Source: Monocercomonoides exilis PA203 (Eukaryota; Protista; Preaxostyla). From it: DNA of 64,000 nucleotides. The position numbers and the translations under genes were made by a program. Below, piece after piece: positions 15,001 through 60,143 of the stretch. Where the stretch lies: positions 682,001-746,000 of the forward strand of contig LSRY02000044.1 in NCBI GenBank assembly GCA_001643675.2, written 5' to 3'. Position 1 is the first letter of the stretch. Each line of letters opens with the position of its first letter. The notes below the pieces were generated by a model. That model saw only the letters and a program-made list of their open reading frames with translations. It ran no database searches and had not been told where the DNA came from.

Positions 15001-16330
15001 AGATGGAGAAAGGAGCGATGCCTGGAGCGAGAATGGCAATGCTGATTGTTGGGATGGCAAGGGCAGGAGCAGGAGCAAGAGCAGGAGCAGTGGCAAGTGC
15101 AGGATTAGGGTCGAGGCCGAGAATATAGATGCAATCGAATGCATGGCAGAGGATAAGCAACGCTGGTGCGATGCCTCGTCGGGCAAATGACTTTTGTGGC
15201 TCTTTCTTAATGGATATTCGATCAAATCCTCAGATGTCGATGCCTATGGGAATGCAGATGGAATCAGAGTATATGCGTAATGTTTTCACTTCTGCTTCTT
15301 GTGTTTCTTGAAACTCTTTTGGAGATGATTAACTTTGTTCCTGGAAAGAAGAAAAGATAATGCCAGTTGCGAAGTTCCAGCAGGTGGAGAACATGAAGGA
15401 ATACCGAGAGAACCAATATCATCGTGTGGTGTCATCTCATTCTGTGCTGGTTGAGTGGAACCATTTCTTCCTGGACTATGCGCGGTATCTGTTTGGATGT
15501 GTCGGGGAGGAGGTGGGCAGGGATACGCGTGAGTGTGGGAGGTCTGTTCCTTTTGTGTCAGCGAATGTGATTGAATGCACCGATTCGTTTGCATCAGCAG
15601 CGTTTGCAGCTGCGCTGACAGATGTTTGTGTGCATCCTGTTTGCGTGGAGAAGGCGACTGAGATGAGTTGAGGAAGGGCGAGTGTGTCTATTAGGAGCAT
15701 GACACAGCCGCAGTGCTGTTTGTGAAGGAGATGGAGGAATTTGAGGGAGTGAAGGAAGGAATAGAAGGAGAAGAAAAAGGAGAAGGAGAAAAGGAAAGAG
15801 AAAGAGAATAAGAGAGACAAGCGAGGAAACAAGGGCTGTAGTTGAGTGGCTTGGGGAAACGAGTGGAGATGAAGCAGGTGGTTGTGTAGAAGTTTGGGTG
15901 TGATGTGAGCGAAGAGTGGGAGATGAATGAGGAAGGGCGGAAGGCGAGGAAGTGTGTGGAGAAGGAGAAGATGCTAGCTGTGCGTGTGTGTGTGCGATGT
16001 GGTGCTGACAAACACGACGTCAGCGCAGATGTCGGTACAGGTGCTGATGCAGGTGCCAGGACGGTCGATTGTACTGCAAAGGGGCAGCGCGACGAGGACA
16101 CAGAGCGTTGTTCCTGGTGCGTGTGGGATGCAGACGGTGTCGTAAGAAGTCTATTTCCCGGAGAATGGGGAGTTTGTGCACTATCCGGTGTTGGTGGCGA
16201 TGCGGGGGCGGAATGTGTGCTGCAGCCGAGATGGAATGCGCCGTGTGAGGGTGGAAGTGGAAGGTGTGGCTGGTGATAAAGAGGAAGCAAGCTTGCCATA
16301 GGAAAAAAGATGTTGCCATATGTGTGGAAT
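12097..16330 (+). pseudogene. Decayed giant gene resembling the Dictyostelium AbpF / related bacterial protein family
   Basis: Motifs YSEFACEKTNILLFKKAPKFFATAVRPSLASKKEKTVVDHYLL, LFAKLNAVEQ, YRENQY..NHFFLDYARY..PFVSAN and YFPENGEFVHYPV (about 16148-16187) match the family as recalled. In-frame stops at 12669, 13059, 15126, 15309 and 15669, plus frameshifts at both ends. Confidence 0.6.
14736..14963 (+). CDS. Ubiquitin-like domain (76 aa, ends LGG) embedded in the AbpF-like frame
   Basis: MVVQVRTMQGKIIRVCVTKETTVEELKELMQKKLGILPDMQKIVFNDVQLSDTRTMSGCFFRNNDELKLMPRMLGG aligns without gaps to ubiquitin (MQIFVKTLTGK..GIPPDQQRLIF..LEDGRTL..LRLRGG). Confidence 0.88.
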
Positions 16331-35000: not shown

Positions 35001-38000
35001 CATTGCTTCTCATTCGATCCATTCACACTGCTCACAATGATTGTGTCACTCTGATGGATCGTAACAAACTCAATCAGATTCGTATCATTAGGATATTCAC
35101 AAGAATCTCCCCCATAGATTGCATTAATTCGTGAGTAATGATTCTCTCGAAGATCAAACTGAAATTGACTTTCATTGATCTGGGATGGGATGTTGAAACA
35201 TTCAATGAAAATGTCATTTCCCACTCTTGCTGTGTTTGAACTGAATTTCATTCCAACAAATGTGAAATTCAAATCCCCTCTTTCCTTTGTTTCCAAATAC
35301 ACTCCTCCTCCTTTCCCTGTGCTGTTGCTGCAGCTGCAATGGCTGATTGTTGAGTCAATCATCTTCATTGATCCAGATGCACCCAATGTGAAGAATATCG
35401 CTCCTCCTTTTTCACTCAATTCTGCTTTGTCTTCTGTGATGTTGCTCGAATTCACAACCAAATAAATTTTATTCTCACTTGCAGATTCCAAAATGCTTGC
35501 TCCATTGTCACTTCTCTTCACTCCTGAAAATGATGAATTGTCAATCTCGATATTTACACATTCTTCATTTATCTTTGTTGGTGTATTGGCTTCTTTGATT
35601 GATAAAATGCATCCTCTGCTTTCATTCAACGATTCCACTCGAACATTCACAAAATGGCAAGTAATTCCAGAATCATGAATGACAAATATGCTGTTTCCAA
35701 CATTGTATAATTCCATCGACAAATCATTCACTTCCACACCACCTCCAATCGCATCCACAAACACACAATCAAATCCATTGTTCACTTCCGCTTCTGAATG
35801 GAATGAACATCCAGTTGCCACCAAATCTCCATTTATATTTGAAATAATTGTTTTAGCAGAGTTGTCAAATCCCGATGCCAGTTGAAGTTGGATATTCGTC
35901 AATTCAAGATGTTCATCATTCACCATGAAATATTCCAGTTGACTTCCAATTGCCTTTTCAAAATTCAATATCGCTTTCACATTCTCTTCTCCCATCTTCA
36001 CACTCTTTTTGATCTGATAATTGGACAAGTTGAATGAATCTTGAATAACTGTCGATCCTTCAATCTGAATTGTTTTCTTTCCATTCCCCTCTTTCATGTT
36101 TTCCATCCCTTTCCACATCGTTTGGCATGGCTCTTCCTCACTTCCACAACGTGCAACATCAAATCCTTCTGATGAGATAAATATCTCAAATGAGCTGTAT
36201 GAAACCAGAAACATGAACAAATCCTTTTCTTCATGAAAATCATCACTTCCCGCAAACAAAGTTTTATCATCTATCATTGATGAATAATCGAAGGCAAATG
36301 TCTCATTTGTCACAGAAGAATTAAAATCCTTTCCCAAAATGAACATGTTCTTCCCATATTCTGCCTCATTCCCATCAAATATCAAATCTCCTGATAATTC
36401 AAATCTTGCATCTGCATCCACCAATGAAAGAAATATCCCTCCTCCTTTCCCTTCACTTCCACTTGTTGATGGTGCACAACACTTTTCAAATCTTGTTGAT
36501 GAGACATACAGTTCAGACGGATTCTCCAATGAAACTAACAGCCCTCCTCCTCTTTTTCCATTCTCTCTCACCTCACATTCAAGGAATGTGCAATTCTCAA
36601 TTCTCATTGTGTTCTTGCTTCCATCAACATTCGAGCTCAAACAAAGGCATCCACCATCTCCTGCTCCTCTCGTGATGTTCTCAAATGATGTATTCTTCAA
36701 TGTGATTGATGAACACTTCTCAATCTGAATTGCTCCACAACTTGGCAGATCACAATTCAAGACTGAACAATTCTTGATTGTGACTGAGCTGTTTGTGGCA
36801 ATCTCAATCAATCCACTCACTTCATTCGTTCCTGTTCGATTCACAACCACTTCATCCATCAGACATTCACAACTTCCATTCACAACAATCACACTTCCCA
36901 CAAATCTCACTTCCCCCACATTCCCTCCACATTTCATCCCAAATATCTCCACTTTCCCTCCACTTGCACTCGCAAACACATAATTCGCAGAATTCACCCC
37001 ATTTCCCATCTTTATCCCGCAATCAGCAAATCTCAATGTCCCTCCTGAAGAATGAACAAATGATGATCGCTCTCCAATCGATCCTCCCAATTCAAATAAT
37101 ATCCCTGTCAATGTTGATGAAACACTGTTCATCACAAGTGCTTCTTGTGTTTTTGTTTCTGTTGCCTCGATTTTTATTCCAACATCTTTGTTGCTCGAAT
37201 CAAACTCATATGGCTGTCCATCCAACTGAACTTCTTCATCAAATGAAAATGTGCTTGTCAGTCTGATCATTCTCTTTGAAATCGGATATCGATATTCACT
37301 CGCTTCCCCAATTGTTCGGCATGGATAATCTTCATATCCACACAGTCTGAATTCACTTCCTTGTTCTCTCCCACTCACATATGCCGGTGATGAAAATGTC
37401 CGAAGAAACACAACAAGTGGAACAATCAGCTCTGGCTTGTTTCTTTCTCTTCCACAAAGTTCATTCAAATCTGCAACTTTAATTCCAATTTCTGGATTGA
37501 ATCCAATTGATGTGCTGTTGATAACAGTTCTCAAATCCTGTGCTTCTTCAAATAAATTCTTCCCTTTCCATGCATTGCACTCACTGAATGTCATGCTCTC
37601 CAATGAAAATGTTCCCATTTGATCGGCAAGTTCAGCAAACATCCCTCCTCCCATTCCTCTCCCTCCATTCTCAACATCCTCTGATGGCACAACGCATCCT
37701 GATAATTTCACTCCTTTCACTCTCAATGTTCCTCCACTTCCAACTGATATCATCATCCCTCCCCCTTTCATTCCATTTCCACCTGAGCATCTTGATGAAA
37801 AATTGCTTTCTTCAATTTTCACATTCCCATTAACCCCCATCCCAACATTCAAACATCCCCCTCCTCCATTTCCACCTGCAACTTCCACCTCCACTCCACT
37901 CACTCTGCTGTTCAAAATCTCCAATTGAACTCCACTTGTCATCGTTATTGGAGATTTCCCATTCATCTTCAGCGTCACTCCACTTTCCATCACAAATCCA

Positions 38001-41000
38001 TCAACAATCAGATTCCCTCCTGCCATCTCAATGATGCTGTATCCGATCTTTCCATCAGTCAATGCCCCATTCTCAAATGAGACTGAACAGTTCGTCACAC
38101 TGAGTGTTGATGTTGAATGGATGAATGCACTTCTCCTTGCTTTTAACTGACCTTTCACAACAAATGAAAGTCTCCTCATTGTCAGTGAACTCGAACATCC
38201 AACAAGCCTATCTTGTGTGGCTGATCTTCCATCACTCACATTCACTCCCATCCTCTCTCCATCCTCTGATGATGATGACACTATTCTGCCTGAAATTATC
38301 ACACCAAATGATGTTGGTCCTGTTATTTCCTTCGTTATTGACGAAGATGAGACAACCTCGATTTCATTCACAGTGCTGCTCAATCTTGAGTTCGCACAAT
38401 AATCAATTGTCAAACACCCAAACCCTTCAAATCCACAATGATCGTGATCCTTCCCATTTCCTCCACTCCCATCAACAATCACTTTTGTTCCCATTGTGCA
38501 TAAATACACAAACAGTGGAATCACTCCACTTTCATTCCCATCCTCGCTCCCACTCAACCTCAATACATCTGATGGAATGGTGCTTGTATCAAAAAATGCA
38601 AATGAGCTGGTATTCACTTTTGACTCCAAAAACACACCACTCCCACAATCAACAAACACATCCTTCCCATATTCTGCCACATTCCCACGATCTTTCGAAA
38701 ACTTCACATTCTGCCCAATTGTCAATCCACATCCTCCACTCTCCATCAGCACAAACATCCCTCCTCCTCTCCCTCCATTTCCCCCACTTCCCCCATTATT
38801 CTCTGCCTTATTCCCATCAATCACACTCGTTCCATTAACATCAAATTTCCCGCTTCCTTGCAAGCAGGCAAAAATACCTCCACCATTCCCAGTTTTGCAC
38901 ACACATTCCTCAATTGTTGTGTTCCACACCACAAATGTCTCTCCTCCCTTCACACTCTTTGCCATCACCACTCCATCTCCTTCTGTCCGATTCACATTCC
39001 GAATTGTCACATTCCCAAGCAAACTCTCTCCTGATGACGATCCGGCTGATAATGGTTCAGAAAACAGAGGCTGTAATATTTTTATATTTTCAATCTCCAC
39101 ATCAATCGTCTTCAATTGCTTCAGCGCCACTTCAAACACAGATGCTGATATAACACTCCCTCCTGATGTTGAAGAGTTGAGCACCACATCCTCCAGCAAA
39201 AGAGTCCCGCTCCCCAATGACACCACAAACACACTTGGCGATGGGCTTCTTGTCGCGTTGTGATCAATCCCCACATGCCCCACCACCAGTTGGCCAGTAG
39301 ATATGCCAAACAGCGTTGTCGAAGTCGAAGAAAGTTCACTTGTCCCAATCACACTCACTGTCTTCCCTTTCCCCAAAACAGAAATCTTCTTTTCCTCAAC
39401 ACTGATCGTCACCCCTTCACTCACATGCTTCCCACCCAGCAACGTGATTGTCGAGCTCAGCTGCGCCATGCTCAACCCCACTGCATGTCCCACTGTCTTG
39501 CAAGGTGCTGCCTCGCTCATCCCACACAGATTGTTTGCGTCATCCCCACCCACCCCAACATACCGATCCTTCATCCCTTCCTTCAACCAATCCTTCTTTT
39601 CTGTGTGCTGAAACACATAACTGGTCGACTGCAAATATGTATAACAAATTCTCTTCTCATTTGTATTCGTTGTGTATGATTCATAAAACGGGTTATTCGA
39701 TTTTTTAAAAATATTATAATAGTCTTGAAAGCAAACATCGTGGCCATATGGAGTGGAGGCGTTGCAACTGCAATCGTGGAAGAAGAAGAAATAGCAATAA
39801 GTGTTGTTGATTGGTGCTTCCGATTGATAAGGTACAATAAACAATCCTCCGCCATATGATGCCGCAGAACACGAAATAAATTGGACACTTCGCATATTAA
39901 ATGCAGTCGGAACATTTTGACAGCCAATCCCCCCACCATATGAACCTGTGAGCGCACACGAAGTGAAACAGCACTCAAACACACAAGCACTCTCTCCTTT
40001 CCCACTTTCTGTTTCAAAGCATTCAGTCCCCAAAGCGTTGAAATTTTGAAAATAAAGCCCCCCTCCCCAGTCGTTTGCTTCACAATTCTGGAATTCGCAA
40101 CCACTGATCCTGAAACATGACGAAATTGATTCAGAATACATCCCTCCCCCTTCATTTTTTTTGGCAGTGCAAGCATTGAATGAGTTGTTCTCAATCTTGA
40201 CTGAATTGATTGAATGACAAAAAATTCCTCCACCGCCATAATGCGCATAGCAGTCGTTGAACGAACAAAATTTCACTGAAAGTGTTCCTGATGCCTTATC
40301 ATTCATGTAAATTGCTCCACCATTTGAAGTTCCATCTGAAAAAGAACCACTTGTCCCAGTAGCACTTGACCCGTTCCACACGCACCAAGTGAATGAATTC
40401 GCCCCATTGTCTGCTATCTGCTGTCTCGCTGGTTTCGACGGATTCCCTTCACTTCCACTGATTGCAACATTCCCTGATCGATAGCACCTGGCAAATGAGG
40501 TGTTCGAGGCATCCAAAGACGATGAAGGGCTGTTCAGCGAGGGGACAATGCCCCCATCATACACATCCCACACTGATGAAAATGAGCATCCACTCATCAA
40601 AAACACTCTTTCGCTCAGCCCTTCACCCAGATGTGTTGTTTTCTGTGGATTTGTGGAGATGTTGAAGAATTCTAATTGGGAAAGAGAAACAAAGTGCGAT
40701 GAAATGAATGTGGCTGAAGACACACAAAATGAAGAGAAATGAGAAGAACAAACAGAAATGTGGCATTTCTCTGGAATCTCTCCTTCCACTGCTTTTGAAG
40801 AGAAAAGTGGAGGAAATATCTGTTCAGTCAAGGATGAGGTTGAAGTTGAAGACGATTTGAGGGAAATGTTGGTGAACAATCCACAGCTCCCACAAAAATC
40901 AAAGGGGGGCGTCTCTCTCTCAACTCCAACAACACAGCCACTCACCTCAACAAAACTTCCATCTGATGCCCTGAGCACACTCTCCCCACCCATTTCCCTC

Positions 41001-41425
41001 AATCCCAATGAATTCAGTTTCAGTGATGAATTGACCCCAACAACACTTCCCTCAACCCCACTCCCACCACACGCACCCTCCTTTCCCCACATTTTCCACT
41101 CATCACAAAAACCCCATTTTTCACATTTCCCAATCTCTCCACCTCCTTCATTCCATTGTTTTGTGCATTTCTTCAACATTCTCTCTTCTTTCAAGGTTTC
41201 TCCTACTCCACCTTCTTTTCCTTCAATATGTGTGTCAAATAAATTGTCATCTCCAATTTTGTTGTTTTGAGCCTTCTCTCGCCATGTGCCTTCAGAATAA
41301 TCCAATTCTCCTTCTTTCGCTGATTCCTCAACAAGTCCTACTCCATCGCTTGTAGCACCCTTGCACACGCACCTCACACTAATTATCCACACACAATAAA
41401 ATATTCCTGACAGCACCAATACCAT
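32099..41425 (-). CDS. Giant single-pass receptor-like protein (3108 aa): signal peptide, beta-helix ectodomain, TM helix, degenerate kinase-like tail
   Basis: Hydrophobic N-terminus, many FxxCxA..GGG(I/L) turns, five CG-x4/5-(P/G)C module heads, TM WIIIVVVLVVILLVVLIGFVIFVV followed by RWRK. Kinase C-lobe remnant RWKAPE..VFSIGIMLWE..IPF with no HRD or DFG. Intronless ORF. Confidence 0.9.
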   Translation of the reverse strand: MVLVLSGIFYCVWIISVRCVCKGATSDGVGLVEESAKEGELDYSEGTWREKAQNNKIGDDNLFDTHIEGKEGGVGETLKEERMLKKCTKQWNEGGGEIGKCEKWGFCDEWKMWGKEGACGGSGVEGSVVGVNSSLKLNSLGLREMGGESVLRASDGSFVEVSGCVVGVERETPPFDFCGSCGLFTNISLKSSSTSTSSLTEQIFPPLFSSKAVEGEIPEKCHISVCSSHFSSFCVSSATFISSHFVSLSQLEFFNISTNPQKTTHLGEGLSERVFLMSGCSFSSVWDVYDGGIVPSLNSPSSSLDASNTSFARCYRSGNVAISGSEGNPSKPARQQIADNGANSFTWCVWNGSSATGTSGSFSDGTSNGGAIYMNDKASGTLSVKFCSFNDCYAHYGGGGIFCHSINSVKIENNSFNACTAKKNEGGGMYSESISSCFRISGCEFQNCEANDWGGGLYFQNFNALGTECFETESGKGESACVFECCFTSCALTGSYGGGIGCQNVPTAFNMRSVQFISCSAASYGGGLFIVPYQSEAPINNTYCYFFFFHDCSCNASTPYGHDVCFQDYYNIFKKSNNPFYESYTTNTNEKRICYTYLQSTSYVFQHTEKKDWLKEGMKDRYVGVGGDDANNLCGMSEAAPCKTVGHAVGLSMAQLSSTITLLGGKHVSEGVTISVEEKKISVLGKGKTVSVIGTSELSSTSTTLFGISTGQLVVGHVGIDHNATRSPSPSVFVVSLGSGTLLLEDVVLNSSTSGGSVISASVFEVALKQLKTIDVEIENIKILQPLFSEPLSAGSSSGESLLGNVTIRNVNRTEGDGVVMAKSVKGGETFVVWNTTIEECVCKTGNGGGIFACLQGSGKFDVNGTSVIDGNKAENNGGSGGNGGRGGGMFVLMESGGCGLTIGQNVKFSKDRGNVAEYGKDVFVDCGSGVFLESKVNTSSFAFFDTSTIPSDVLRLSGSEDGNESGVIPLFVYLCTMGTKVIVDGSGGNGKDHDHCGFEGFGCLTIDYCANSRLSSTVNEIEVVSSSSITKEITGPTSFGVIISGRIVSSSSEDGERMGVNVSDGRSATQDRLVGCSSSLTMRRLSFVVKGQLKARRSAFIHSTSTLSVTNCSVSFENGALTDGKIGYSIIEMAGGNLIVDGFVMESGVTLKMNGKSPITMTSGVQLEILNSRVSGVEVEVAGGNGGGGCLNVGMGVNGNVKIEESNFSSRCSGGNGMKGGGMMISVGSGGTLRVKGVKLSGCVVPSEDVENGGRGMGGGMFAELADQMGTFSLESMTFSECNAWKGKNLFEEAQDLRTVINSTSIGFNPEIGIKVADLNELCGRERNKPELIVPLVVFLRTFSSPAYVSGREQGSEFRLCGYEDYPCRTIGEASEYRYPISKRMIRLTSTFSFDEEVQLDGQPYEFDSSNKDVGIKIEATETKTQEALVMNSVSSTLTGILFELGGSIGERSSFVHSSGGTLRFADCGIKMGNGVNSANYVFASASGGKVEIFGMKCGGNVGEVRFVGSVIVVNGSCECLMDEVVVNRTGTNEVSGLIEIATNSSVTIKNCSVLNCDLPSCGAIQIEKCSSITLKNTSFENITRGAGDGGCLCLSSNVDGSKNTMRIENCTFLECEVRENGKRGGGLLVSLENPSELYVSSTRFEKCCAPSTSGSEGKGGGIFLSLVDADARFELSGDLIFDGNEAEYGKNMFILGKDFNSSVTNETFAFDYSSMIDDKTLFAGSDDFHEEKDLFMFLVSYSSFEIFISSEGFDVARCGSEEEPCQTMWKGMENMKEGNGKKTIQIEGSTVIQDSFNLSNYQIKKSVKMGEENVKAILNFEKAIGSQLEYFMVNDEHLELTNIQLQLASGFDNSAKTIISNINGDLVATGCSFHSEAEVNNGFDCVFVDAIGGGVEVNDLSMELYNVGNSIFVIHDSGITCHFVNVRVESLNESRGCILSIKEANTPTKINEECVNIEIDNSSFSGVKRSDNGASILESASENKIYLVVNSSNITEDKAELSEKGGAIFFTLGASGSMKMIDSTISHCSCSNSTGKGGGVYLETKERGDLNFTFVGMKFSSNTARVGNDIFIECFNIPSQINESQFQFDLRENHYSRINAIYGGDSCEYPNDTNLIEFVTIHQSDTIIVSSVNGSNEKQCGTNDLPCYSIEHGLVHLTSEYVSQIFIVEESVIGREINLEEMSLSSKNREMCKVEVKSNIERTKDSLISTRETVSLVRVNFVFNSYFISSHESLISPEGGILEIINCSFSSKQSNEEGNAEYANIPFHIIQMRKGELQLDGCTISNLILQKSSIYLSSSLPSVIYLFEISNSTIKTSLINIKECGQLTTKDFNAENISVEGNEESLISCLTMKKTIQLTNCTMGGVSSKTTKGKLMKLEDCLDVKMDSCIFNGNSKGKNEKNSNTEEDICKWDGSLVDVVKSSVMMKDTTISNSPEGGITMSGREMTVNDGRFENNNPFIEGYPSLRRNIICSDSGTLNVMSLKGGDGVLPNTSLWMLNEGCSFEGIASERDSSFFIPVLESVETKEEANRMKLTFKGMLLIPCNLSFSIVKSLGEEKEIEKHDFDSNGFLSEREVEGSVAKDFISNYGDEIEVSMYILFGNTESPASTGSIILKNKSEIESKAKGDERIVEGGKEGKSYWIIIVVVLVVILLVVLIGFVIFVVRWRKAKEEAKKYKEIVDDNIKKDPKAFEMVTMDMSHEEQWRRAEKKNEENAKKRVFVKTMVHSESEEYLLAESGSTEYILGKDSGKIPDWALEKVDEKEEEEEVEELRKRSPSLSLSSTGTETSYVQIEDVSPTTSSMSNLVDAMACSSPFEKLIVDLRDSLFMLLHGRNEKKEMEIESLEQREMTSALVLFWVANGALHSFDEMEVPLSSLENLSPHIVLFGEGMVISIALHSDCSSDDDSDSSSISSASTSDCSSVSNDDRESVPSPAFEDEPDNWKECLRWKAPELLGNKNMEATRQSVVFSIGIMLWECLSLQIPFGEYSAEVAGWKIKEGELPNMCLIERSSLGGIVRCCTSREAAERMGLADLKREFIQRFPAGAAILTISDSIIEEGETYDDGGGGRGDCGEVRNMAVQGICEVERAMKEEGKEDVGEEVARNGK

Positions 41426-43964: not shown

Positions 43965-45296
43965 ATGCTGCCTTCTTCTTTTCCTTCTTCTTCTTCTGCT
44001 TCTGCTTCTTCCTCTTCCTCTTTTTCTCCTTTAAATTCTTCTTCTTCTTCCTTCACCTCTCATTATTCCTCATCCCAGCCATTAACACCCTCATACTCTC
44101 GAAATGCCTTCACAAATGCTCCTCTTTCTCCTTCTTTCCATTCCTCTTCTCTTGCTGACTCACCCACAAACAACAATGCTGATGATATTCATTTCCCTTC
44201 TTCTTCTCTTTCCAATTTCACTTCTTCTTTTTCTTCTCTGCCTTCTTCTTCTTCTTCCTCCTCCTCTTCCACTTCTTCTTTGTCTTTGTCTTTGAGCAAT
44301 CAGAACTTCGAAAATATTTCATTTCCTTCTGCTTCTCTTTCTTCATTCATTTCAACTTCTCCTTCTCAAACACAATCAGCTTCATCATCATCATCATCAT
44401 CTTCTTCTTCTTCTTCTTCCTCTTCTGATTTGACTGAATACGCACCTTCTATCGCGAATGCAGCTGAATCAGCAGAAAATGCACAAACACCATCTGATTC
44501 TTCTTCTTCTTCTCAGAATGAATTCAATGAAGATCAACAGAATGAAGACATTCCTATGCATTCTTCACCTTCACCTCCTTATTCTCCTCCCCTTCAAACT
44601 TCTTCTTCTTCTGAATCTTCTTCTTCTTCAACTTTATCAATTTCATCATCATCTTCTTCTTCTTCCTTTTCCTTTTCCTCTTCGCCCTGTTCTGATTTGG
44701 AGCAGCAAAAGAAGACGTCTCCATCAAATTCTTCATCTTCTCTTATTCCAAGCGACTTCCTCTTGTTTTGGCGTGTTGTCCCTTCTGATGAATCAACCAA
44801 CAGCTCTTCATCTGAACAATTAAGCCCTTTCTCTTCTTCTTCTTCATCTTTTTATTCTTCATCTTCCTCTTCTTCCTTCTCCTCCTCATCTTCTTCTCTT
44901 TCCCCCTTCTCTTCTCTCCTTTCTTCTCTCTCTCGCTCCATCTCTTCCTCCATTCCACACACCGCCTTCGCCCGCGCCACTCTCTCAGTCCCCTGCGACG
45001 AAAACAGCATCCTCTCCTTCTCTGCCTTCCTGTCTCTCCTCTCTCTCTTCGAATACTCCGTCGCCCAGCCTCTTCTCCAGCTCAACATCATCCGGAGAAT
45101 CATCCGAATTCTCCGGGCAAACAGCAAAAACCCCCATTTCGCGTCTAAATTGGGCACAACTGAGACGCTTATGAGGTTGTTCCCTGATCTGAACGAGGCA
45201 GTCAAGAGAGAATGCATCGAAGTGCTGGCTGTGCACACGCGATGCTCATTGAGCGACCAGAGCTTGGGTGGAAGCTCGCAAATGAATTCTTCTCTG

Positions 45297-45327
<31 letters not shown>

Positions 45328-46418
45328 CTTCTTCTTCTTCTCCTCCTCCTCCTCCTCCTCCTCCTTTGCATTCTTCTCTGTCTCTGCCTTATTCTTCGTC
45401 TTATCTTCCTTCTTTTGCATTGGCATTGAACTTCGCATATCCTTCTTTTTCTCCCTTCCACCCTCTTTTCTCTCTCCCTTCCCACCACTCAACACTTGCG
45501 TCTTCATCTCCTTTATTCAATTCTTTATCTTCTTCCTCTTCTTCTTCCTCTTCTTCCTCTTCTTCCTCTTCATTTGCCTCTAAGCAAAGAATGCTCTCCA
45601 CTCTTCGCAACACCAAAATTGTTGAGCGTGTTTCTTCTCTTCTCGCCTCTTTGGTTGTTCTTTCTGTTTGTGTCAGCCCTGACTATCCAAAAGAATGCGC
45701 ATGGAGCAGCCTGAAGCAATTCTGTGATGATTCTCTTGATGAAGAGAAGGGAAATCTACCTTCTCTCAAGCTGAAAAGCTCTGCTAGTGAATGTTTGATT
45801 AATAATTCTATTGGAAATTCATCAACAGGATTGAATAATTCTTCATCATCTTCTTCGTCCTCCTCCCCCTATTTCATCCCCCCCACCTCCTTCTTCCTCC
45901 ACACCGCCAAGCATCTCCGCTCTCTTTACTCCCGCCACGGCATTTCCGTCCGTCCCGACGAGTTCCCTTTCATTGAGATCGTCACAGACACTTTTGACCT
46001 GGTCTCTTCCTCAATCATCCGAAGAGACATCGGCAGAATCGAAGCAGACGTCGTCACTCACACTCACAATGCTCCTTTCGACTCGCCTTTTTCGACCATT
46101 TCTGCTGCCACCTCGTTTGTGGACCCGGTTTCTTTGGCTAATTCTTCTTTTCCCTCGCCTTCTTTGTCTTCCTCTGCTGCTTCATCAGCTGATGGAAATG
46201 TTGATTCTTCTTCTTTGAATTCTACGTCTTCTTCTCAAACTTTTCATTCTTCTTCATCTTCTTCTTCATCTTCTTCGCTTTCTTCGCCTTCTCTGCCTAA
46301 CCAAGTGCTTCGAATTCTTCGTCTTCATCTTCGTCATTTTCGCCATTTTCTTCATCAAATATTTGGAACATTTGAATTTTTATCTTACGAAAGGGCATAC
46401 ATAATTATCTGTTTTTGA
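43965..46418 (+). CDS. Ser-rich low-complexity hypothetical protein, probably part of a larger disrupted gene (about 42700-46420)
   Basis: 817-aa ORF with poly-Ser tracts separating short helical-looking blocks. No family recognised. Confidence 0.45.
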
Positions 46419-47851: not shown

Positions 47852-50800
47852 ATGTGCGTGATTCAGATGATGGTTGCTGTTGCAATCACCATTATTAAAA
47901 ACGAAGGAAATTGCCAGAAGGTGATAACCGATCCATCGCATGACACATTCTGTGAACAATGCGATGAAAATTGTCTTATTGAAGGATGCATTTCGAAAAC
48001 GGGTATGAAATCGGTTGCATTTATATAAATATATATTTGATAACTGTAATTTTGCTTTAGTTGAAGTTTCTGTTTTCGATGGGAAAGAGCTGCTCGATAA
48101 TAATCATAATTACAAAAATGGCGAAAAAGGAAAAGCCAACAAACATCCAAAGAACAAGGCTTTCATTCCTTTACGTGCATCAACGCGTTTGGGGCAGATG
48201 TGCGAAGAAAGTGGATTTGAAGGAATTTTGAGATTGATTAATTCTTCAGCTGAGTTGAAAGGGATGATATTAACGAGACATGATTGTTGGAGTGTGGTAC
48301 GTGGTTTGAGGGGGAGTGTGGTTGCGGTGAGGGGATGTGGTGTGGAGATGGGGAGAGGCAAGGAGGTGGGGGTGTTTATGCTGGGCGGGTGCAGAGGAGT
48401 GTTTTGGAACATCACGCTGAGAGGGGTTGGAAGGGGAGGAAATGTGTGTGGGAGACTGTTTGGAGGAGAGGGGAGGATGGGGCAGACGAGGAGTGGGAGA
48501 GAAGGTGGGGAAAGAGGGGGAGGATGGGGTAGAGGAAGCGGAAGAGATGAAGGAGGAGAGAGAGGGGGACAACGAGGAGGTGGAGGAAGAAGAGGTGGAG
48601 AAGGAAGAGGAAGTGAAGGAAGAGGAGAAGAAAGTGAAGGAGGAGGGAGTGTATTGGTGAGCGAGTCCGATTTCCCATCTTTTTGTGTGTCTTCAGCCCC
48701 GTTTCTGGCACCTCCTCTGACACCCCTTGTGACACTCACCCGACTGACCTTCTTCAACATCTCCACAAATCCATTGAAAACAACACATCTGACTGAAGGG
48801 CAGATCCAAACCTCGTTTCTGATGAGTGGATGCACATTTTTATCGGTATGGGATGTTTATGACGGGGGCATTGTCCCTTCACTCAACAGCCCTTCGTCTT
48901 CCTTGGCTGCCTCGAACACCTCGTTTGTCAGGTGCTATCGCACTCAGAATGTTGAATATACAGGGAGTGAAGGGAATCCATCGAAACCAGAGAGACAGAA
49001 TCAGACAGATGATGGGATGAATTCGTTCACTTGGTGCGTGTGGAATGGGTCAAAAACTACAGGAACAAGAGCTTCTTATACAGATGGAGTATCGAGTGGA
49101 GGGGCGATTTTCATGTATAACCTGGGATCGGGAACACTTTCAGTGAAATTTTGTTCTTTCAATGACTGCTATGCGCATTATGGTGGTGGAGGAATTTTGT
49201 GTGTTTCAATAAATTCCATCAAAATCGAAAACAACTCATTCAATGCTTGTACAGCAAAAAATAACGGTGGTGGTGGGATATATGCTTATAATATAGAATT
49301 ATGTGTAAGGATCAGTGGGTGCGAGTTCCAGAAATGCAAAGCGAATAGCTTCGGAGGAGGTCTTTATCTTTATACTTTTAATATTTCTGGATCTGCCTGT
49401 ATTGGAACAGAAAGTGGGAAAGGGGAGAGTGCTTGTGTGTTTGAGTGCTCATTCACTTCGTGCTCTCTAACAAGTCAATATGGCGGAGGGATGTACTGTG
49501 TAACTGTTCCAGCTGCATTCAAAATGAGGAGCCTCCAATTTATTTCGTGCTCAGCAGTTTCATATGGTGGAGGACTATATCTCAAGCCATATCAATCAAT
49601 CGCTCCAAGCAACAACCTTTATTGTTATTTTTTTTTCTTCCATGATTGCAGTTGCAACGCCTCCACTTCATATGGCCATGACGTGTATTTTTATGATAAT
49701 TTCAATCTTTTTTCGTCAAACAATCCGTTCTATGAATCGTACACAACGAATAGCAATGATATGAGAGTGTGCTATTTTTACGGAAGTTATCAGTTTTCAG
49801 AAAAGAAGGATTGGCTGAAGGAAGGGATGAAGGATCGGTATGTTGGAGTGGGTGGGGATGATGCGAGCAATCTGTGTGGGATGAGTGAGCCTGCACCGTG
49901 CAAGACAATGGGGCATGCAGTGGATGTGAGCGTTGCCCAACTGGGCTCAATAATCACAGTGCTTGATGGGAAGCATGTGAACGAAGTGGAGTCAATCAAT
50001 GTTGGGGGAAAGAAGATTTTAATTGTTGGGAAAGGGAAGGAGGTGAGCGTGATTGGTACGAAATCTCTTTCTTCGTCTTCTACAACACTTTTCAGTGTGA
50101 CGAGCGGACAGCTGGGCGTGGAGCATGTGGGGATCGATCACAACGCGACAAGAAGCTCATCACCAAGTGTGTTTGTGGTGTCTGTGGGGAGCGGGACTCT
50201 TTCGCTGGAGGATGTGGCGATCGACTCTTCGACATCAGGAGGGGGTGGAATCTCGTCATCTGTGTTTGAAATGGTGTTGAGGCAGATGAAAATGATTGAT
50301 GTGGAGATCAAAAATATGAAAATGAGTCAACCTTTGTTCTCTGAACCATTATCAACAGGATCGGCATCAGGAGAAAGTGTGCTGGGGAATGTGACAATTC
50401 GGAATGTGAATAGGACAGAAGGAGATGGAGTGGTGATGGCAAAAAGTGTGAAGGGAGATGAGACATTTGTAATGTGGAACACAACAATAGAAGTATGTGA
50501 GTGTGCGAATGGAAATGGTGGAGGTATTTTTGTTTGGTTGCAAGAAAGCGGGAAATTTGATGTTAATGGAACGAGTGTGATTGATGGGAATAAGGCAGAG
50601 AATAATGGGAGAAGTGGGGGGAATGGAGGGAGAGGAGGAGGGATGTTTGTGTTGATGGAGAGTGGGGGATGTGGATTGAGAATTGGGCAGAATGTGAAGT
50701 TTTCGAAAGTGAAAAAGAATGTGGCAACATATGGGAAGGATGTGTTTGTTGATTGTGGGAGTGGAGTGTTTTTGGAGTCAAAAGTGAATACAACTTCATT

Positions 50801-53800
50801 TGCATTTTTTGACACAAGCACCATTCCATCAGATGTGTTTCAACTGAGTGGGAGTGAAAATGGGGAAGAAAATGGAGTGATTCCACTGTTTGTGTATTTG
50901 TGCACAATGGGTACAAAAGTGCTTGTTGATGGGAGTGGAGGAAATGGGAAGGATCACAGCCATTGTGGATTTGATGCATTCAAGTGTTTGACAGTTGATT
51001 ATTGCACGAACTCAAGAATGAGCAGCACTGTAAATGAAATAGAAGTTGTCTCATCTTCGTCAATTGCCAAGGAAATAACAGGACCATCATTTGGTGTGAG
51101 TATTTCAGGCAGAATAGTGTCATCATCATCAGCGGGGGAGAGGATGGGAGTGAATGTGAGTGATGGAGGATCAGACACGCAAGACTGGCTTGTTGGATGT
51201 TCGAGTTCACTGACAATGAGGAGACTTTCATTTGTTGTGAAAGGTCAGTTGAAAGCAAGGAGAAGTGCATTCATCCATTCAACATCAACACTCAGTGTGA
51301 CGAACTGTTCAGTCTCATTTGAGAGTGGGGCATTGACTGATGGAAAGATCGGATACAGCATCATTGAGATGACAGGAGGGAATCTGATTGTTGATGGATT
51401 TGTAATGGAAAGTGGAATGACACTGAAGATGAATGGGAAATCGCCAATCACAATGACAATTGGAGCGCAATTGGAGATATCAAACAGCAGAGTGAGTGAA
51501 GTGGAGGTGGAAATGAATGCGGCAGGTGGAAATGGAGGAGGGGGATATTTGAATGTTGGGATGGGCGTTAATGGGAATGTGAAAATTGAAGAAAGCAATA
51601 TATCCTCGACATGCTCAGGTGGAAGTGGAATGAAAGGGGGAGGGATGATGATGTCAATTGGAAGCGGAGGAACATTGAGAGTGAAAGGAGTGAAATTATC
51701 AGGATGCGTTGTGCCATCAGAGGATATTGAGAATGGAGGGAGAGGGATGGGAGGAGGGATGTTTGCTGAACTTGCCGATGCAACGGGAACATTTTCATTG
51801 GAGAGCATGACATTTAGTGGGTGCAATGCATGGAAGGGGAAGAATTTATTTGTGGAAGCTCAGGATTTATCGGCTGTCATCAACAGCACTTCAATTGGAT
51901 TCAATCCAGAAATTGGAATTAATGTTGCAGATTTGGATGAACTTTGTGGAAGAGAAAGAAACCAGACAGATGTGATTGTTCCACTTGTTGTGTTTCTTCG
52001 GACATTTTCATCTCCAGCATATGTGAGTGGGAGAGAACAAGGAAGTGAATTTAGATTGTGTGGATATGAAGATTATCCATGCAAAGGAATTGGGAATGTT
52101 GGAGAAGTTCAGTTTCCGAGTTCAAAGAGATTCATCAGACTGACAAGCACATTTTCATTTGTTGAAGAAGTGAAGTTGGATGAATAATCATATGAGATTG
52201 ATTCGAGCAACAAAGATGTTGGATTGAAAGTTGGAGGAACAGGAACAAAAACACAAGAAGCGTTGGTGCTGAACAGTGTTTCATCAACATTGACAGGGAT
52301 ATTGTTTGAATTGGGAGGATCGATTTGGGAACGTTCATCATTTGTTCATTCGACAAGTGGCACATTGAGATTTGCTGATTGTGGGATAAAGATGGGAAGC
52401 GGGGTGGATTCTGCGAATTATGTGTTTGTGAGTGGGAGTGGAGGGACATTATTCATTTCAGGTTTTAGTATGACTCATGTGAGATTTGGAATGAATCCAT
52501 TTATTGTTGTTGATGGAAATGGGGGTGCTTCGATTGAGGATTCGTTGCTTGAGAGTGTGGAAACAACAAATATGAAGGGATTGATTGAGTATTCATCATC
52601 ATCGAGTTCATTGACGATTGGGAATGTGACAGCACAAGAATGTGTGATGGGAGGGGAAGGACTGACATGGGATGATAATGGAAAAAAACTGGGGATGAGG
52701 AATTGCACGATTATGAAAACTCGCAGTTTGGAGGGAAATGGGAGCGTTGTGAGTGGAGAAGTTGGGGATGGATGTGCTGTTGAAGTGAGTGATGTTGTGA
52801 TTGAAGGATGTGGAACATTGAAGGGATGTGGAGGAGGGATGGGTGTGATGTTGAAGGGAACAGGAGAAATGCGTTTGGGGAAGAGTGGAGTGGTGACATT
52901 ATTTGAGAAATGTTCAGCTGGTGGTGAAGGATCAGTTGGGGGATATGGGGGAGGAGTGTTGCTGAGATGCGAAAAAGGAGGAAGCGACTTTGTGATGAGT
53001 GGATTGACATTTGGAAGAGGTGAGGGAGCAAACACAGCGGCACATGGAGGAAACAATGTGCTTGTTGAAGGAACAAGTTTGCCACAGTTGGTGAATAATG
53101 TTTCATTTGACTTCTCATTTGAGATTGAAGGCGAAGGATTCAACATTAAAGATCTTATGGGAGCAGAAAATGGGAATGAGATGAGATTGATTCCAGTTGT
53201 TGTGTTCTTTCGAGAGAAGCCGAGTGTTGGGTATGTGAATGGGGGAAATGGAGGGATGGACTATCATAAGTGCGGATATGCTGACTTTCCATGCTCCACA
53301 TTGACATATGCAGGAACAAATCTATTTGGCACATCGCCAGCAACACTGAAACTTGCTGATGGAAGTTTTATTTCCGATGAAATGACACTCAACACTCAAG
53401 AAATGAACATTGATGGAGATATTGAAAAGGCAAAGATTGGAATAAGCGAAGGAGGAGAAAACGTATTTTTGATAAAGAGCGAACGAGCAGTATCGTTTTC
53501 GTCATTGGCATTTTCGATTTCAACATTTGCCGAATCAAGAAAGGAGTATGTATTTCTGTGCGGTGCAAACACATTGAGATTTGAAGGATGTTCATTTGGT
53601 GCAGAATCAGAAGAGATTGGAATTGGATTGATTTGCGGGAAAGGAGGGAAAGTGGAGCTGGTGAAATGTGAATTTGAAAACATTCAAATGACCAAAACAG
53701 GGATGGTGACTTTTGATGGAATAGGGGTTGGAGGATTGATTGATGAGGTGATTGTGAGGAATGTGACAAGAGAAAATGTGGGAAGGAGCTTATTTGAGCT

Positions 53801-56800
53801 GAGAAATGGAGGAGATGTTGAGGTTAAGAACACAACGATGAATAAATCGAGTTTTGAGAATGGAAATGAGATTGAGATTGGAGAAGGGATTAATGCGAAA
53901 ATCTGGAACTGCACATTCAAATCAATTCAGAGAGTGAATGGGAATGGAGGGGTGTTGAATGGGAAAGTGGGAAGTGGTAAGTGTGTGGATATTAACAAAT
54001 GCGTGTTTGAGGAATGCAGATGCAATTCAGTGAGTACAATTGGGGGAGGGATTGTTCTGATTGTGGGAGATGGAGGAAAACTGTTGTTTGATGATAACAA
54101 GATGAATGGATGCACAGTTTCAGAGAGAACCGGAAAAGGAGGAGGGTTGCATCTGACATTTGAAACAACGAATGCAGAATATTCTATGAAGAATGACACT
54201 TTCACGAACAATGTGGCAGAAAAAGGAGAAGATGTGTATTTGGTGTGTGGATCACCATGGAGGATGCTTCTTCCAGCGTTGTGGGAAGGGACAGCCACAA
54301 GAGTCACAGCAGAAAATAAGATGTGGGTGCTTGAGTCATCTGAACCAAGAAAAGAAGACTCACTGATCAATTATCTGTTTCCAAGATTGGGAACGGATTT
54401 GTTTGTGAGCAATGCTGGAAACGGATTATCAAGTTGTGGAGCGAAAGAAAATCCTTGCTCGTCTGTTGATATTGGGTTTGATCGGTTGAAGGATGAGATA
54501 GAGAGGATTATGCTTGTTGGTGCTGCTTCAGTGAGCAAGACGATCAACAGAGGTGGGAAAGGGCTGACAATCAAAGGGAATGAAGAAACGAGAGAACTGG
54601 TTGTTGAAGAGGGAGGGAAATTTGAATTGACAGAAGGAGATGGGCAAACACATTTGACTTTGTCACTTCTTCAGATTTCGCTTCCATGCTCCTCCACTGC
54701 AAGTGCGACTGGTGACGAATCGATTATGGAAGCGAGGATTGGGGAATGTTTCATTTTGGATTGTTTGTTTTCAGGAGAAGAAGGGAATTCAAATGTGAAT
54801 GAGTGTGGGAAGTGGATAGTGATTGGGAATGGAGGGGTTATTCGAATAGAGAGAACAGAAATGAATGGGATAAGATTCGAAGGATGTGGAATTGCACAAC
54901 TGGGAGGAGGGAATGTGTTATTTGAGAACTGTTCATTGAATGGGATTGAGACCAGTGGAGGAGGAGTGATTGTGGGGAATGGTGGATCGGAAGTGACATT
55001 GAGGAACATGACAGCATTGGGGTGTGTTGTGGGAGCAGGATCGCTGATAACATCGAATGGAGGATCGAGTCTGAGAGTTGATGAAGAAAGCAGATTTGAG
55101 AATATTGATACAGAAAGTGTGAGTGGAGGGTGTTTGAAGAGCGAGATGAAGCTGAATGATTTGCTTGAAATGGGATCATCATCCATATTGAAATGCTCTG
55201 CGAATGGAAATGGAGGAAGAGGAGGAGGAATATATCTGAATTTGAGTGACAATTGTGTGAATAACTTTGTGTTGACAACATTGACATTCGAAGGCAATGT
55301 TGCAACTGAGGGAAGGGATTTGTTCATTTCTTGCAAGAAACTGAATGAAACAGTGACGAAGGAGAGGTTTGGATTTGAATACAAATATGAAAATGGAGAA
55401 AGAGAAGGAGAAGGTCAGGCAGTTGATATGAAAGGGGTTGACAGAGATCATTTTGAGGAGAGTGTTGATCTTGGGCTGTTTCTTGTTGAAATGAAGGGAA
55501 TGGAGGTGTGTGTGTCGAGGGAGGGGTATGACACATTGGGATGTGGGAGCGATGGATATCCATGTGAATCGATGTGGAGTGGAATAAGCCACATTGACAG
55601 AAGTGGGACAGAAGGAGAAAGGAAAGTGAAAGTGAGGGATGAAGGGACAATTGAAGATATCTATTCATTCACAGATGCACTTGTGATTGATGGGTGTGTG
55701 AATGAAGGAGATGAAACCAAACACAAGCCTATTCATTTTGAAGGGACAATCAAAGGGAATTCTGCATCATCATCTTCATCTGTTATTTCATCAACTGCCT
55801 CACTCAGCTTATTATCTTTGAAGTTACAAATTCCAAGTCAATTTGAGCCAAGCATGAATACACTGATCTCATCGAGTGGGATTCTTCAACTTGAAAGCTG
55901 TTTATTTGAGATTCGATCATCAACACACACTGTTCAATACTCGTTGATAACAACAACCAGTGGAAGTTGCACATTGAAAGGATGCAGTTTGACAGGGCCA
56001 TCATTTGTCAAATCTCCATTGGTGATGGCTTCTTCTGTTTTTATTGAAAGCAACAACTTTTCAAACATTGTGAACACTGGAAGCGGTGAAGGAGGCATTG
56101 CAAAAGTGACATTGAAAGGGAATGAAAAACTGGAAATAAAATCAACAAATGTGTCATCTTGTTCGCTTTCATCAAGAAATGGAAAAGGAGGATTCTTGTA
56201 TTTGGATTGTCAAAACTGTTTAAATGAAAAGCCATTTCTTTTGGAAAGCGTAACATTTGAGAACAACACAGCATCCAATGGAAAGAACATGTTCATTTTG
56301 GGAAAGGATTTTAATTCTTCTGTGACAAATGATTCATTCAACTTCGATTATTCATCAATGGCAAATGATAAAACTCTGTTTGTGGGAAGTGATGATTTTC
56401 ATGAAGAAAAGGATTTGTTCATGTTTCTGGTTTCATACAGCTCATTTGAGATATTTATCTCATCTGAAGGATATGATGTTGCACGCTGTGGAAGCGAGGA
56501 AGGGCCATGCTTCACAATGTGGAAAGGGATGAAAAACATGAGAGATGGAGATGCTTTGAAAACAATTCAGATTAATGGATCAACAATTATTCGAGATTCA
56601 TTCAACATGTCCAATTATCAGATCAAAAAGGGTGAAAAGATGGGAGGGGAAGATACAAAAGCAATATTGAATTTTGAAAAGGCAATTGGAAGTCAGCTGG
56701 AATGTTTCATGGAAAATGATATTCACCTTGAATTGATAAATATCCAACTGCAACTTGCATCTGGATTTGACAACTCAGCCAAAACGATTATTTCAAACAA

Positions 56801-59800
56801 AGGAGGAGATTTGGTGATAAGTGAATGTTCATTCCATTCAGAGGCAGAAGTGAACAATGGATTTGATTGTGTGTTTGTGGATGTGATTGGAGGAACTGTG
56901 GAAGTGAATGATTTGTCGATGGAATCGTGCAATGTTGGAAACAGTATTTTTGCAATCGACAATGCTGGAGTTTCTTGCCATTTTGTGAATGTTCGAGTGG
57001 AATCGTTGAATGAAAGTGGAGGATGTCTTCTTCTGATCAAAGGAACTGAATTAACAACAAAGATAAATGAAGTGGGTGAGGAAATGAGTCTCAACATTGA
57101 TAATTCGTCATTTTCAGGAGTGAAGAGAAGTGACAATGGAGCAAGCATTTTGGAGTCAAAGAGTGAGAATAAGATTTGCTTGGTTGTGAATTCGAGCAAC
57201 ATCACAGAAGACAAAGCAGAATTGAGTGAAAAAGGAGGGGCAATATTCTTCACATTGGGTGCATCTGGATCAATGAAGATGATTGACTCAACAATCAGCC
57301 AATGCAGCTGCAGTTTCAGTTCAGGGAGAGGAGGAGGGGTGTATCTGGCGACAAAGGAAAAAGGAGAATTGGATTTCACATTTATGGGGATGAAATTCAG
57401 TGACAACAGAGCAAGAGTGGGAAATGATATTTATATTGAATGCTTCAACATCACATCGCAGATTAATGAAAGTCAATTTCAGTTTGATCTTCGAGAAGGC
57501 AACTTCAATCGATTCGATGCAATCTATGGAATTGATAGTTGTGAGCACAAAGAAGATGCAAATCTGATTGGATTTGTGACTATCCATCAGAGTGACACAA
57601 TCATTGTGAGCAGTGCGGTTGGATCGAATGACAGACAATGTGGAACAAACACACTTCCATGTGATACAATTGAGCATGGGCTGGTGCATCTGACATCTGA
57701 ATATGTGAGCCAAATATTCATTGTTGAAGAGAGTGTGATTGGAAGAGAAATAAATCTGGAGGAGATGAGTTTGAGTTCGAAGAGCAGAGATTTTTGTGAA
57801 GTTGAAGTGAAATCAAGAATTGAAAAAACAAGAGAGGCTTTGATTTCAACAAGAGAAACAGTCTCATTGATGAGAGTGAATTTTGTGTTTGATTCAAATT
57901 TTGTTTCTTCACATGAATCACTGATATCACCAGAAGGAGGGATTCTTGAAGTGGTGAATTGTTCATTTGACTCAAAACAATCGGCTGGAGAAGGAAATAT
58001 AGAATTAGCAATTATTCCATTTCACATTATTCAAATGACAAAAGGAGAATTACAACTTGACGGATGCTCAATATCAAATCTCATTCTTCATGAATCTGCA
58101 TTATCTCTATCATCATCACTTTCATCAGTAATTGATTCATTAACGATTTGCAATTCAACAGCTAAAACTTCTCTGATTGATATTTATGAATGTGGAAAAT
58201 TAACAATCAAAAATTTCAACACAGAAAATATCACAGTTGAGGGAAATGAAGAAACATTAATATCTTGCTTGACAATGAAAAAGACGATGCAATTGACAAA
58301 TTGCACAATTGGTGGAGTCAGTTCACAGACAACAAAAGGGAAATTGATGAAATTGGAGGATTGTTTGGATGTGAAAATAGACAATTGTGTTTTTGATGGA
58401 AGTGTAAAAGAAAGAAATGAGAAGAATTTGAATGTGGAAGAAGAGATGTGCAGGCGGGAAGGATCTCTTGTGGATGTTGTGAAGAGTTTTGTGATGATGA
58501 AAGATACAACAATCTCAAATTCACCAGAAGGTGGAATATCAATGAGTGGAGGAAATGTGAATATTGAGATGGGGTTATTTGAGAACAACAATCCATCGAT
58601 TGAAGGATATCCATCGTTGAGAAGGAATATCATCTGTTCAGATTCAGGAACATTGAATGTGAAGAGTTTGAAAGGAGGAGATGGATTGGAGGACAATACT
58701 TCTCTTTGGATGTTGAATGAAGGGTGCAGTTTTGAAGGGATTGCTTCAGAGAGAGATTCGTCATTCTTCATTCCTGTTTTGGAGAGTGTAGAGGTAAAAG
58801 AAGAGGCAAATAGAATGAAATTGACATTCAAAGGGATGCTTCTTGTTCCATGCAATCTGTCATTCTCAGTTGTGAAGAGGAAGGGAGAAGAGAAAGAGAT
58901 TGAAAAACATGAGTTTGATTCAAATGGATTCTTGTCAGAAAGAGAAGTTGAGGGAAGTGCGACAAAGTATCTTATCAGCAACTGTGGAGATGAAATAGAA
59001 GTAAGTGTGCATGTTTTATTTGGGAATGCAGAATCTCCTTCATCAACACAGCCATTTATTCTGAAGAATACAAGTATTTCTCCACCAAATGATAATGAAA
59101 GAATCTCAAAGGGAGGAAATAAGAATAACAATGGAAATTTGAATATGTTTGAATGGAGTTTGTTTGCCTTTATTGGGTTCGTTGTTGCTTTTTTAATTTT
59201 TGTTGCTTTGTTTGTTGTGGTGGTTGTGCTTTTGCGAAGGAAACTGAGGGAAGCCGAAAAGAAAGTTGAGAGAGAGAGATTAGAAACTGAACAGATAATG
59301 GGGAAGATTGAGAGGAGAAGAAGGGAAAACAATGGAAGAAGCTTTGAGATGAGCGAAATGCCATCAACATTACTGGAAGGGATGACGAGCCAAATTCCGC
59401 TTCTCATTGACAACGATGAAGATCTTCCAGAGCCTCCTCCGATGAGCAATGAAGAAATTCTGAATGAAAATGATCTTCCAGATCTGGAACCACCATTAGC
59501 ATTTTCAGAGAATGCTTCTGTTCCTGGAATGCAACAATCTCATTCATTCAATGTGATATCAGCAAAGAAGCCATTTCGAGAGAAAGAGAAAAAGAACGTC
59601 AAAACATTGCACTCAGTAATTCATTCAGTGCAAGGTAATTTCACACTGGGAACAAGAGCGATGGATGTTGTTGATGGGAAGGAAGTGGTTTTGGCGGTGG
59701 CAGAGCTGTTTGAGCATTTGATTTCAGTTGGAGACGAGAGAGTAGGGATGATGGGGAGGCAGCTGTGCCCGTATTCAATTTTTGTGGAGGAAGGAAACGA

Positions 59801-60143
59801 AAATGAAATATACCTATTGACAGAGGAATTGGAGGATGAAAAGGAGAAAGATGAACTAAAGCGATGGAAGGCACCTGAAGCGGGAGATGAAGAAGAGGGA
59901 ATTGAAAAGGCTGCTGTTTTTTCACTTGGACTAATTCTGCATGAAATGACAACAGGCGAAGTGCCATTGAGCGAGTGTGATGCAGAAGAAGCACAGGAGA
60001 TGATGAGAGATGGAGTGCGACCACTGACAGAAGGAATCGAAGGAGAAGACATGGTTGAGCTGATGGAGAAGATGTGGGCAGATGAGCCAGATTACAGACC
60101 GAATTTGGCTCAAGTGATCCGCTTTCTGAAAGTGCTTGATTGA
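47852..60143 (+). CDS. Second giant beta-helix receptor paralog (about 4070 codons), interrupted by one in-frame TAA at 52185-52187
   Basis: Probable first exon 47852-48002 and intron 48003-48060. ORFs 48015-52187 and 52224-60143 share one frame and are collinear with the 3108-aa paralog across the stop. Eight CG..PC modules, TM near 59153-59233, tail with RWKAPE..VFSLGLILHEM..VP. Confidence 0.88.

Follow-up and report, generated by a model that had tools for sequence, protein, structure and literature searches.

The question raised by this locus is whether the variable face of a domain at the outer end of two giant surface proteins is a surface for recognition or only the side of a conserved fold that is free to change. 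The locus lies in a 64,000-nucleotide stretch of the genome of Monocercomonoides exilis PA203 (contig LSRY02000044.1, positions 682,001 to 746,000 of the forward strand), here called the window, and positions are counted from its first letter. The window holds two giant receptor-like genes, A on the minus strand and B on the plus strand, arranged head to head. An earlier note, made from the DNA letters, had flagged positions 49020-49820 as a hypervariable, aromatic-rich beta-helix face in this gene pair and had proposed a diversified recognition repertoire. Both genes are members of a large M. exilis family, hundreds of giant receptor-like proteins that combine a beta-helix with a dead-kinase tail. 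The product of gene B is a giant type-I membrane protein whose membrane-distal, outermost head domain is encoded by the flagged stretch. The conserved Pmp-type beta-helix of the head carries a tyrosine-rich stripe fixed in register, which we judge, by slightly better than an even chance, to be a contact surface diversified among paralogs on receptor-like proteins.

32099-41425, minus strand: gene A, 3108 residues in one open frame with a signal-like N-terminus (from the open reading frame list and translation; P0001 in the protein search)
39503-40561, minus strand: head beta-helix domain of gene A, 73% identical to the head of gene B
48061-60143, plus strand: main reading frame of gene B (from the open reading frame list and translation); the whole gene spans 47852-60143
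48858-49898, plus strand: head beta-helix domain of gene B, 347 residues; the flagged 49020-49820 is its seven-coil core

A tyrosine-rich stripe on the head domain

Paralogs were sought in the 82.3-Mb, 101-contig Nanopore assembly of M. exilis (PMC8767320). Of 2026 first-look candidates in the genome, at least 117 were scored as head copies, with 67-85% identity, and the description of the two genes as a pair was thus too narrow. The head sample comprised 71 of these copies, 62 of them unique, and 61 paralog heads entered the analyses of variation. All 71 sampled heads aligned over their full length without frameshift. In protein searches, more than 110 named MONOS proteins matched the head. 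In the genome literature the 332 genes of the family figure just as the largest 'tyrosine kinase' family (PMC6759080), and our literature search found no paper tying Monocercomonoides to Pmp-type or beta-helix ectodomains.

In the structural model the head is a right-handed parallel beta-helix with seven coils of 28 residues. The coils follow a Pmp-type plan composed of GG[GA] with a hydrophobic residue, 14 intervening residues, Fxx[C/N] and a further 4-6 residues. AlphaFold2 with the paralog alignment predicted all-beta coils in the core, with a predicted local distance difference test score (pLDDT) of 70-94; the flanks were modelled poorly and the overall mean was 58. Each coil anchor residue starts a predicted strand in the DSSP elements of this model. 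The exhaustive aligner VIA-align gave a Z of 16.6 and a root-mean-square deviation of 3.9 Å over 238 residues, and all of its top 50 rows were right-handed beta-helices, while a Foldseek search of PDB with the same model returned weak beta-helix matches, none of them significant.

The Pmp criterion applied was GGA[ILV] alternating with FxxN at the spacing GGA-x14-18-FxxN. By the relaxed pattern GG[AG][ILVM]-x12-23-Fxx[NC], 9-10 occurrences were counted per protein, five of them in the head; strict GGA[ILV] occurred just twice per protein. Pfam gave no PF02415 match at E<=1 in any of the 61 heads or the full proteins, and no repeat family in the heads. A head profile search retrieved 2278 proteins and reached PF02415-rich ones at E 1e-37 to 1e-40. 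In the distant relatives, which carry strong Chlam_PMP repeats (PF02415), the alignment runs through the coils, at profile positions of about 125-230. Relatives of the head were found in the oxymonads Streblomastix and Blattamonas, and one match is a Tritrichomonas 'polymorphic outer membrane protein'. The predicted coils, the VIA-align result and the profile matches to PF02415-rich proteins uphold the proposal of a beta-helix of Pmp-like coils. The heads are not members of the Pmp family in the strict sense, because they fall below the Pfam threshold and belong to proteins without autotransporter parts. Their coil spacing equals that published for chlamydial Pmps, in which GGA closes T3, a short PB1 comes next, the motif residues point inward and most variability lies in T3 (PMC11166332).

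The register of the coils was anchored on the hydrophobic residue after GG[GA], with a coil length of 28. In the 61 paralog heads the entropy maxima fall on equal offsets around each GGG, and the autocorrelation of entropy is highest at lag 28. Six offsets per coil are variable, -6, -5 and -4 before the GGG corner and +1, +3 and +4 after it, which makes 42 sites, and about 12% of the head positions vary. Random anchors equalled the register variance in 1 of 5000 trials. The entropy profile that the earlier note had called for is therefore periodic and not uniform along the protein. In gene B, the variable corners defined by the register analysis are as follows.

49089-49121, plus strand: variable corner of coil 1, offsets -6 to +4 around the GGA-I anchor
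49176-49208, plus strand: variable corner of coil 2; at domain positions 108, 116 and 117 the probability that the nonsynonymous rate beta exceeds the synonymous rate alpha, P(beta>alpha), is above 0.9
49260-49292, plus strand: variable corner of coil 3
49344-49376, plus strand: variable corner of coil 4; domain positions 163, 172 and 173 are positively selected in the site-grid model
49473-49505, plus strand: variable corner of coil 5; site-grid positions 207, 208 and 215
49557-49589, plus strand: variable corner of coil 6; site-grid positions 236, 241 and 243
49665-49697, plus strand: variable corner of coil 7, with a degenerate GGG corner (G-H-D); site-grid position 279

Identity between copies is 43% at the 42 stripe sites and 82% in the rest of the helix, and 58 distinct stripe signatures occur among the 61 copies. 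The aromatic character of the variable face was borne out, with tyrosine making up 26% of stripe residues against 3.7% elsewhere (7-fold) and phenylalanine, tryptophan, tyrosine and histidine together 32% against 14%; serine, asparagine and aspartic acid are also common. At three registers of the stripe tyrosine reaches 40-48%. Outward positions on the other two sides of the helix have a register entropy of 0.1-0.7. Among paralogs there is hardly any change at the inward motif residues, at many cysteines or on two of the three sides, with a ratio of nonsynonymous to synonymous divergence (dN/dS, omega) of about 0.2. Read through the published Pmp geometry and the predicted strands, the stripe would comprise the T3 loop ahead of GGG, residues +1 and +3 of PB1, which point outward, and the beginning of turn T1. 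Since the variable sites share their register in stacked coils, they should form one stripe along the rod; this agrees with the suggestion that they lie on one side of the solenoid, and not with the scattered placement that the earlier note had held would speak against it.

The same register appears in the two genes of the window. The six scaffold motifs and the three contrasting post-GGG stretches listed in the earlier note are present in both translations, the counterpart on the minus strand being the gene A head. The differences between A and B fall on 26 of the 42 stripe sites and on 47 of the 225 other sites of the flagged stretch (odds ratio 6.2, p = 2.7e-7), so their clustering at the register is real. 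The word hypervariable was too strong for the domain, since 64% of the A/B differences lie off the stripe sites and divergence is far greater in the N-terminal and cytoplasmic regions than in the head.

Site rates were obtained by pruning likelihood summing over internal states and from independent sequence pairs, with no ancestral sequences. A one-ratio codon model gave an omega of 0.34 for the head. In 29 phylogenetically independent pairs, omega was 1.04 (0.89-1.22) in the stripe and 0.21 in the rest of the helix. Only register +3 was clearly above 1, with a dN over domain dS of 1.51 (1.27-1.78); taken with its own dS the ratio was 1.9-2.7, in truncated as well as long copies. The earlier note had held that values well below 1 at these sites would speak against it; the class at about 1 and register +3 above 1 are not well below, but the interval of the class includes 1. 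In a site-grid codon model, purifying selection acts on 231 of the 347 sites and P(beta>alpha) is above 0.9 at 26, and twice the gain in log likelihood (2*delta lnL) was 146 when beta>alpha was allowed. In the same 28 long genes, 2*delta lnL was 40 in the head, with 20 sites, and 4.8 and 0.5 in two downstream modules. Selection on the stripe is probably a mixture of relaxed constraint and diversifying selection, the latter being clearest at PB1 +3.

Readings of the stripe

Several findings weigh against a contact surface. The head stays below the PF02415 threshold of Pfam, half of the sampled heads are in truncated copies, and gene B itself has an in-frame stop. The placing of the variable sites on one face comes from register, predicted strands and published Pmp geometry, not from measured positions. 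The main rival is the neutral drift of the only unconstrained side: the stripe would be the sole exposed side that does not pack against modules or partners, and would have no recognition role. The omega of 1.04 for the class, whose interval spans 1, is what neutral drift of unconstrained surface residues would also give. Many of the positive sites of the site-grid model have low synonymous-rate estimates and a beta below 1. The paralogs give a star-like tree with poor support and the genes are mosaic, so that recombination may inflate the site tests. What tells against drift is that replacement at register +3 outpaces synonymous change in independent pairs, in both classes of copies, that neutral sites should reach background composition and the stripe instead keeps its excess of tyrosine, and that the signal of positive selection is missing in the downstream modules under the same test. 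Drift by itself is therefore regarded as rather unlikely, though it deserves serious weight. Variant surface protein families exist in gut parasites, and the stripe may alternatively be an exposed epitope: the proteins would form an abundant surface coat, and the epitope would diversify against host antibodies or other antagonists. Such evasion would leave the same selection signature as a contact surface, and it would agree with the great size of the family, whose copies are in many cases clustered and partly broken, and with life in an animal gut, which PMC12308965 gives for M. exilis. Epitope escape fits poorly with the conservation of the rest of the exposed surface and the small share of variable head positions; M. 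exilis is regarded as a commensal, and RNA contigs from across the family suggest, as weak evidence, that many members are expressed and not one. Evasion is thus considered improbable.

A further reading, that the head as a whole changes faster in protein sequence than the modules downstream of it in these receptors, arises from the contrast between genes A and B. Their identity is 70-78% in the head and 80-96% at 50340-52400; in the N-terminal and cytoplasmic regions it is 4-40%. Synonymous divergence falls in parallel: dS is 0.5-1.3 over head and neck (48858-50340), with an omega of 0.12-0.33, and three- to five-fold lower, 0.10-0.26, at 50340-52400, where omega is 0.24-0.49. Omega in the head is hence equal or lower. 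Among 28 relatives ranked by closeness to gene B, gene A is 16th-18th in the head and 1st at 51108-51857, and other segments have other nearest relatives. As dS falls in parallel and the nearest relative changes by segment, the contrast reflects mosaic history. By these sequence comparisons the genes are mosaics, and the downstream similarity of A and B points to recent shared ancestry and not to slower protein evolution. The claim that the downstream modules are much more similar accordingly stands for the pair and fails for the family, because among 29 long members entropy is 0.6-0.95 in the head, the lowest of the compared outer region, and 1.2-1.8 downstream. Mean omega under the one-ratio model (M0) is also alike in the 28 long genes, 0.33 in the head and 0.31-0.39 in other segments. 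Faster evolution of the head was rejected on the parallel fall of dS, the mosaic rankings, the lowest family-wide entropy and the equal M0 omega, and we give it hardly any credence.

Gene structure, tails and shortened copies

Genes A and B share a type-I topology, with a hydrophobic N-terminus as a putative signal, a large ectodomain and a single transmembrane helix. Gene B corresponds to the public protein model MONOS_3938 (P0003) in k-mer comparison. The remaining features of the two genes are given below.

47852-48002, plus strand: exon 1 of gene B, coding for a hydrophobic N-terminus and putative signal peptide
48003-48060, plus strand: intron 1 of gene B, 58 nucleotides, GT..AG, spliced in frame, with the identical junction in MONOS_3938
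52120-52215, plus strand: putative intron of gene B, 96 nucleotides, GT..AG, in frame; spliced out in the public model and spanning the TAA below
52185-52187, plus strand: in-frame TAA of gene B; paralogs have CAA or CAG at the aligned codon
59154-59234, plus strand: predicted transmembrane helix of gene B
59832-60128, plus strand: kinase C-lobe remnant of gene B (Pfam profile positions 159-258 only)
33428-33502, minus strand: predicted transmembrane helix of gene A
32312-32596, minus strand: kinase C-lobe remnant of gene A (Pfam)

The counterpart of 52120-52215 is coding in gene A. In gene B this segment may have changed from coding sequence into an intron, or its removal may be an annotation work-around. 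No RNA joint across it was seen among the short RNA-library contigs, which cannot show the status of the stop codon. In the searches, gene B was used as separate pieces on either side of the TAA, and in alignments the TAA was treated as X or N. Four metatranscriptome runs of one study contain short contigs identical to gene B at 48060-48304, 49028-49133, 49533-49751 and 51419-51534. The contig at the 5' end matches perfectly from 48060, the predicted splice acceptor, and is preceded by 16 unmatched letters. Many other RNA pieces derive from conserved segments of paralogs. The sequence of gene B is present in RNA libraries; the contigs are too short to speak for level, exclusivity or restriction to single cells.

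In both proteins the cytoplasmic tail ends in a partial kinase domain. The Pfam kinase match was limited to profile positions of about 158-258 in all nine tails tested. A full receptor kinase domain (TKL group in the annotation of the literature) would have a Gly-loop, the VAIK lysine, HRD and DFG, and the tails of A and B lack such a domain. By regular-expression search of 98 relatives with a transmembrane helix, HRD and VAIK occurred in none, a DFG-like motif in 2 and APE in 89. The tails of A and B look like dead kinases, as just the C-terminal half of the kinase is kept. Lacking the catalytic half, such a tail would therefore need docking partner proteins for signalling. Between A (32099-33600, minus strand) and B (59000-60143, plus strand) the tails have 4-36% identity and a dN of 0.7-1.0.

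Dozens of shortened copies bear a head, with open frames of 430-750 residues, at 125000-605000 of assembly contig C42, at 1.79-1.96 Mb of C80 and at 60-67 kb of C71 (loci L002-L030 and L058-L070). They often form inverted pairs with identical arms, as in L011/L012, L020/L021, L022/L023 and L026/L027, and stop at three recurrent junctions 72-173 residues past the head. Copies with a common junction show a mutual dS of about 0.5 and yet a scaffold dN/dS of 0.15-0.22, and are for this reason unlike decaying pseudogenes. The heads may be seen as a 'paratope library' of the germline with the beta-helix as its scaffold, in which hundreds of tyrosine-rich stripes would each have their own specificity and the head-only arrays would serve as functional secreted binders or donor cassettes; we put this forward as a speculation and consider it quite doubtful. 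As donors, head-only cassettes could by segmental gene conversion give rise to new mosaic receptors such as gene B.

The entire 5' part of gene B is of the C42 type. Upstream of its head, a low-complexity stretch rich in glycine, arginine and glutamic acid (48400-48650, plus strand) occurs also in C42-type copies and not in gene A. Relative to gene A, gene B has about 1100 additional residues of ectodomain modules at 52446-56279. An open frame of 817 residues between the two genes (43965-46418, plus strand) has a product dominated by serine runs. At 12001-16000 and 32000-60000 the coding strands are strongly skewed to G over C (GC skew +/-0.3 to 0.5), and the GC content of these blocks is 40-50% against about 30% in the spacers.

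Proposed function of the stripe and comparison with known systems

As a contact surface, the stacked stripe would be the putative site of ligand binding, and hundreds of germline copies would offer different specificities. The ligands would probably be molecules on the surface of bacteria or of the host in the gut, and the kinase-remnant tail may signal via docked partner proteins. If the stripe binds, a gut flagellate without mitochondria would have a Pmp-type beta-helix as the base of a very large, inherited repertoire for recognition. This scaffold is otherwise known from bacterial adhesins, and its use would add a further solenoid solution beside leucine-rich repeat (LRR) receptors of plants and the variable lymphocyte receptors (VLRs) of lamprey. 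The largest 'tyrosine kinase' family of M. exilis would also come to be seen as receptor-like proteins whose tails are dead half-kinases. For experiments the stripe is a small, defined target of 42 swappable residues.

The closest likeness in fold is to chlamydial Pmps (PF02415) and the Pmp-like proteins of trichomonads, which share right-handed beta-helix coils with the GG[A/G]-hydrophobic corner and F-x-x-[N/C]. With the chlamydial proteins the head further shares the spacing of 14-18 and then 4-6 residues, the inward motif residues and the variability centred on T3 (PMC11166332). The M. exilis proteins differ in having no autotransporter barrel or Pmp middle domain but a single transmembrane helix and a kinase-remnant tail. 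Their heads carry GGG instead of GGA and mostly Fxx-Cys instead of FxxN, and the family is eukaryotic with hundreds of copies.

In receptor-like kinases and resistance-gene LRRs of plants, replacement changes are centred on outward residues of one strand per repeat. Plant LRR receptor-like kinases also resemble the M. exilis proteins in their solenoid ectodomain, single transmembrane helix, kinase or pseudokinase tail and large, clustered, recombining families, whereas in M. exilis the scaffold is a beta-helix, the tail consists of the C-lobe only and the stripe is confined to the N-terminal module. Lamprey VLRs share a constant solenoid scaffold, diversity on one face and contact residues rich in aromatics, serine and asparagine. 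Their diversity is built somatically from cassettes, while each M. exilis variant is a separate germline gene and the mosaicism seen here is germline only. Entamoeba histolytica transmembrane kinases (TMKs) form a large type-I family of receptor kinases and pseudokinases with cysteine-rich repeated ectodomains, and some are implicated in phagocytosis. The two systems are alike as large families of this kind with cysteine-rich repeats in gut protists, but the TMK ectodomains are far smaller and made of CXXC-type repeats, and many TMKs keep catalytic motifs, in contrast to the Pmp-type beta-helices and kinase remnants of M. exilis.

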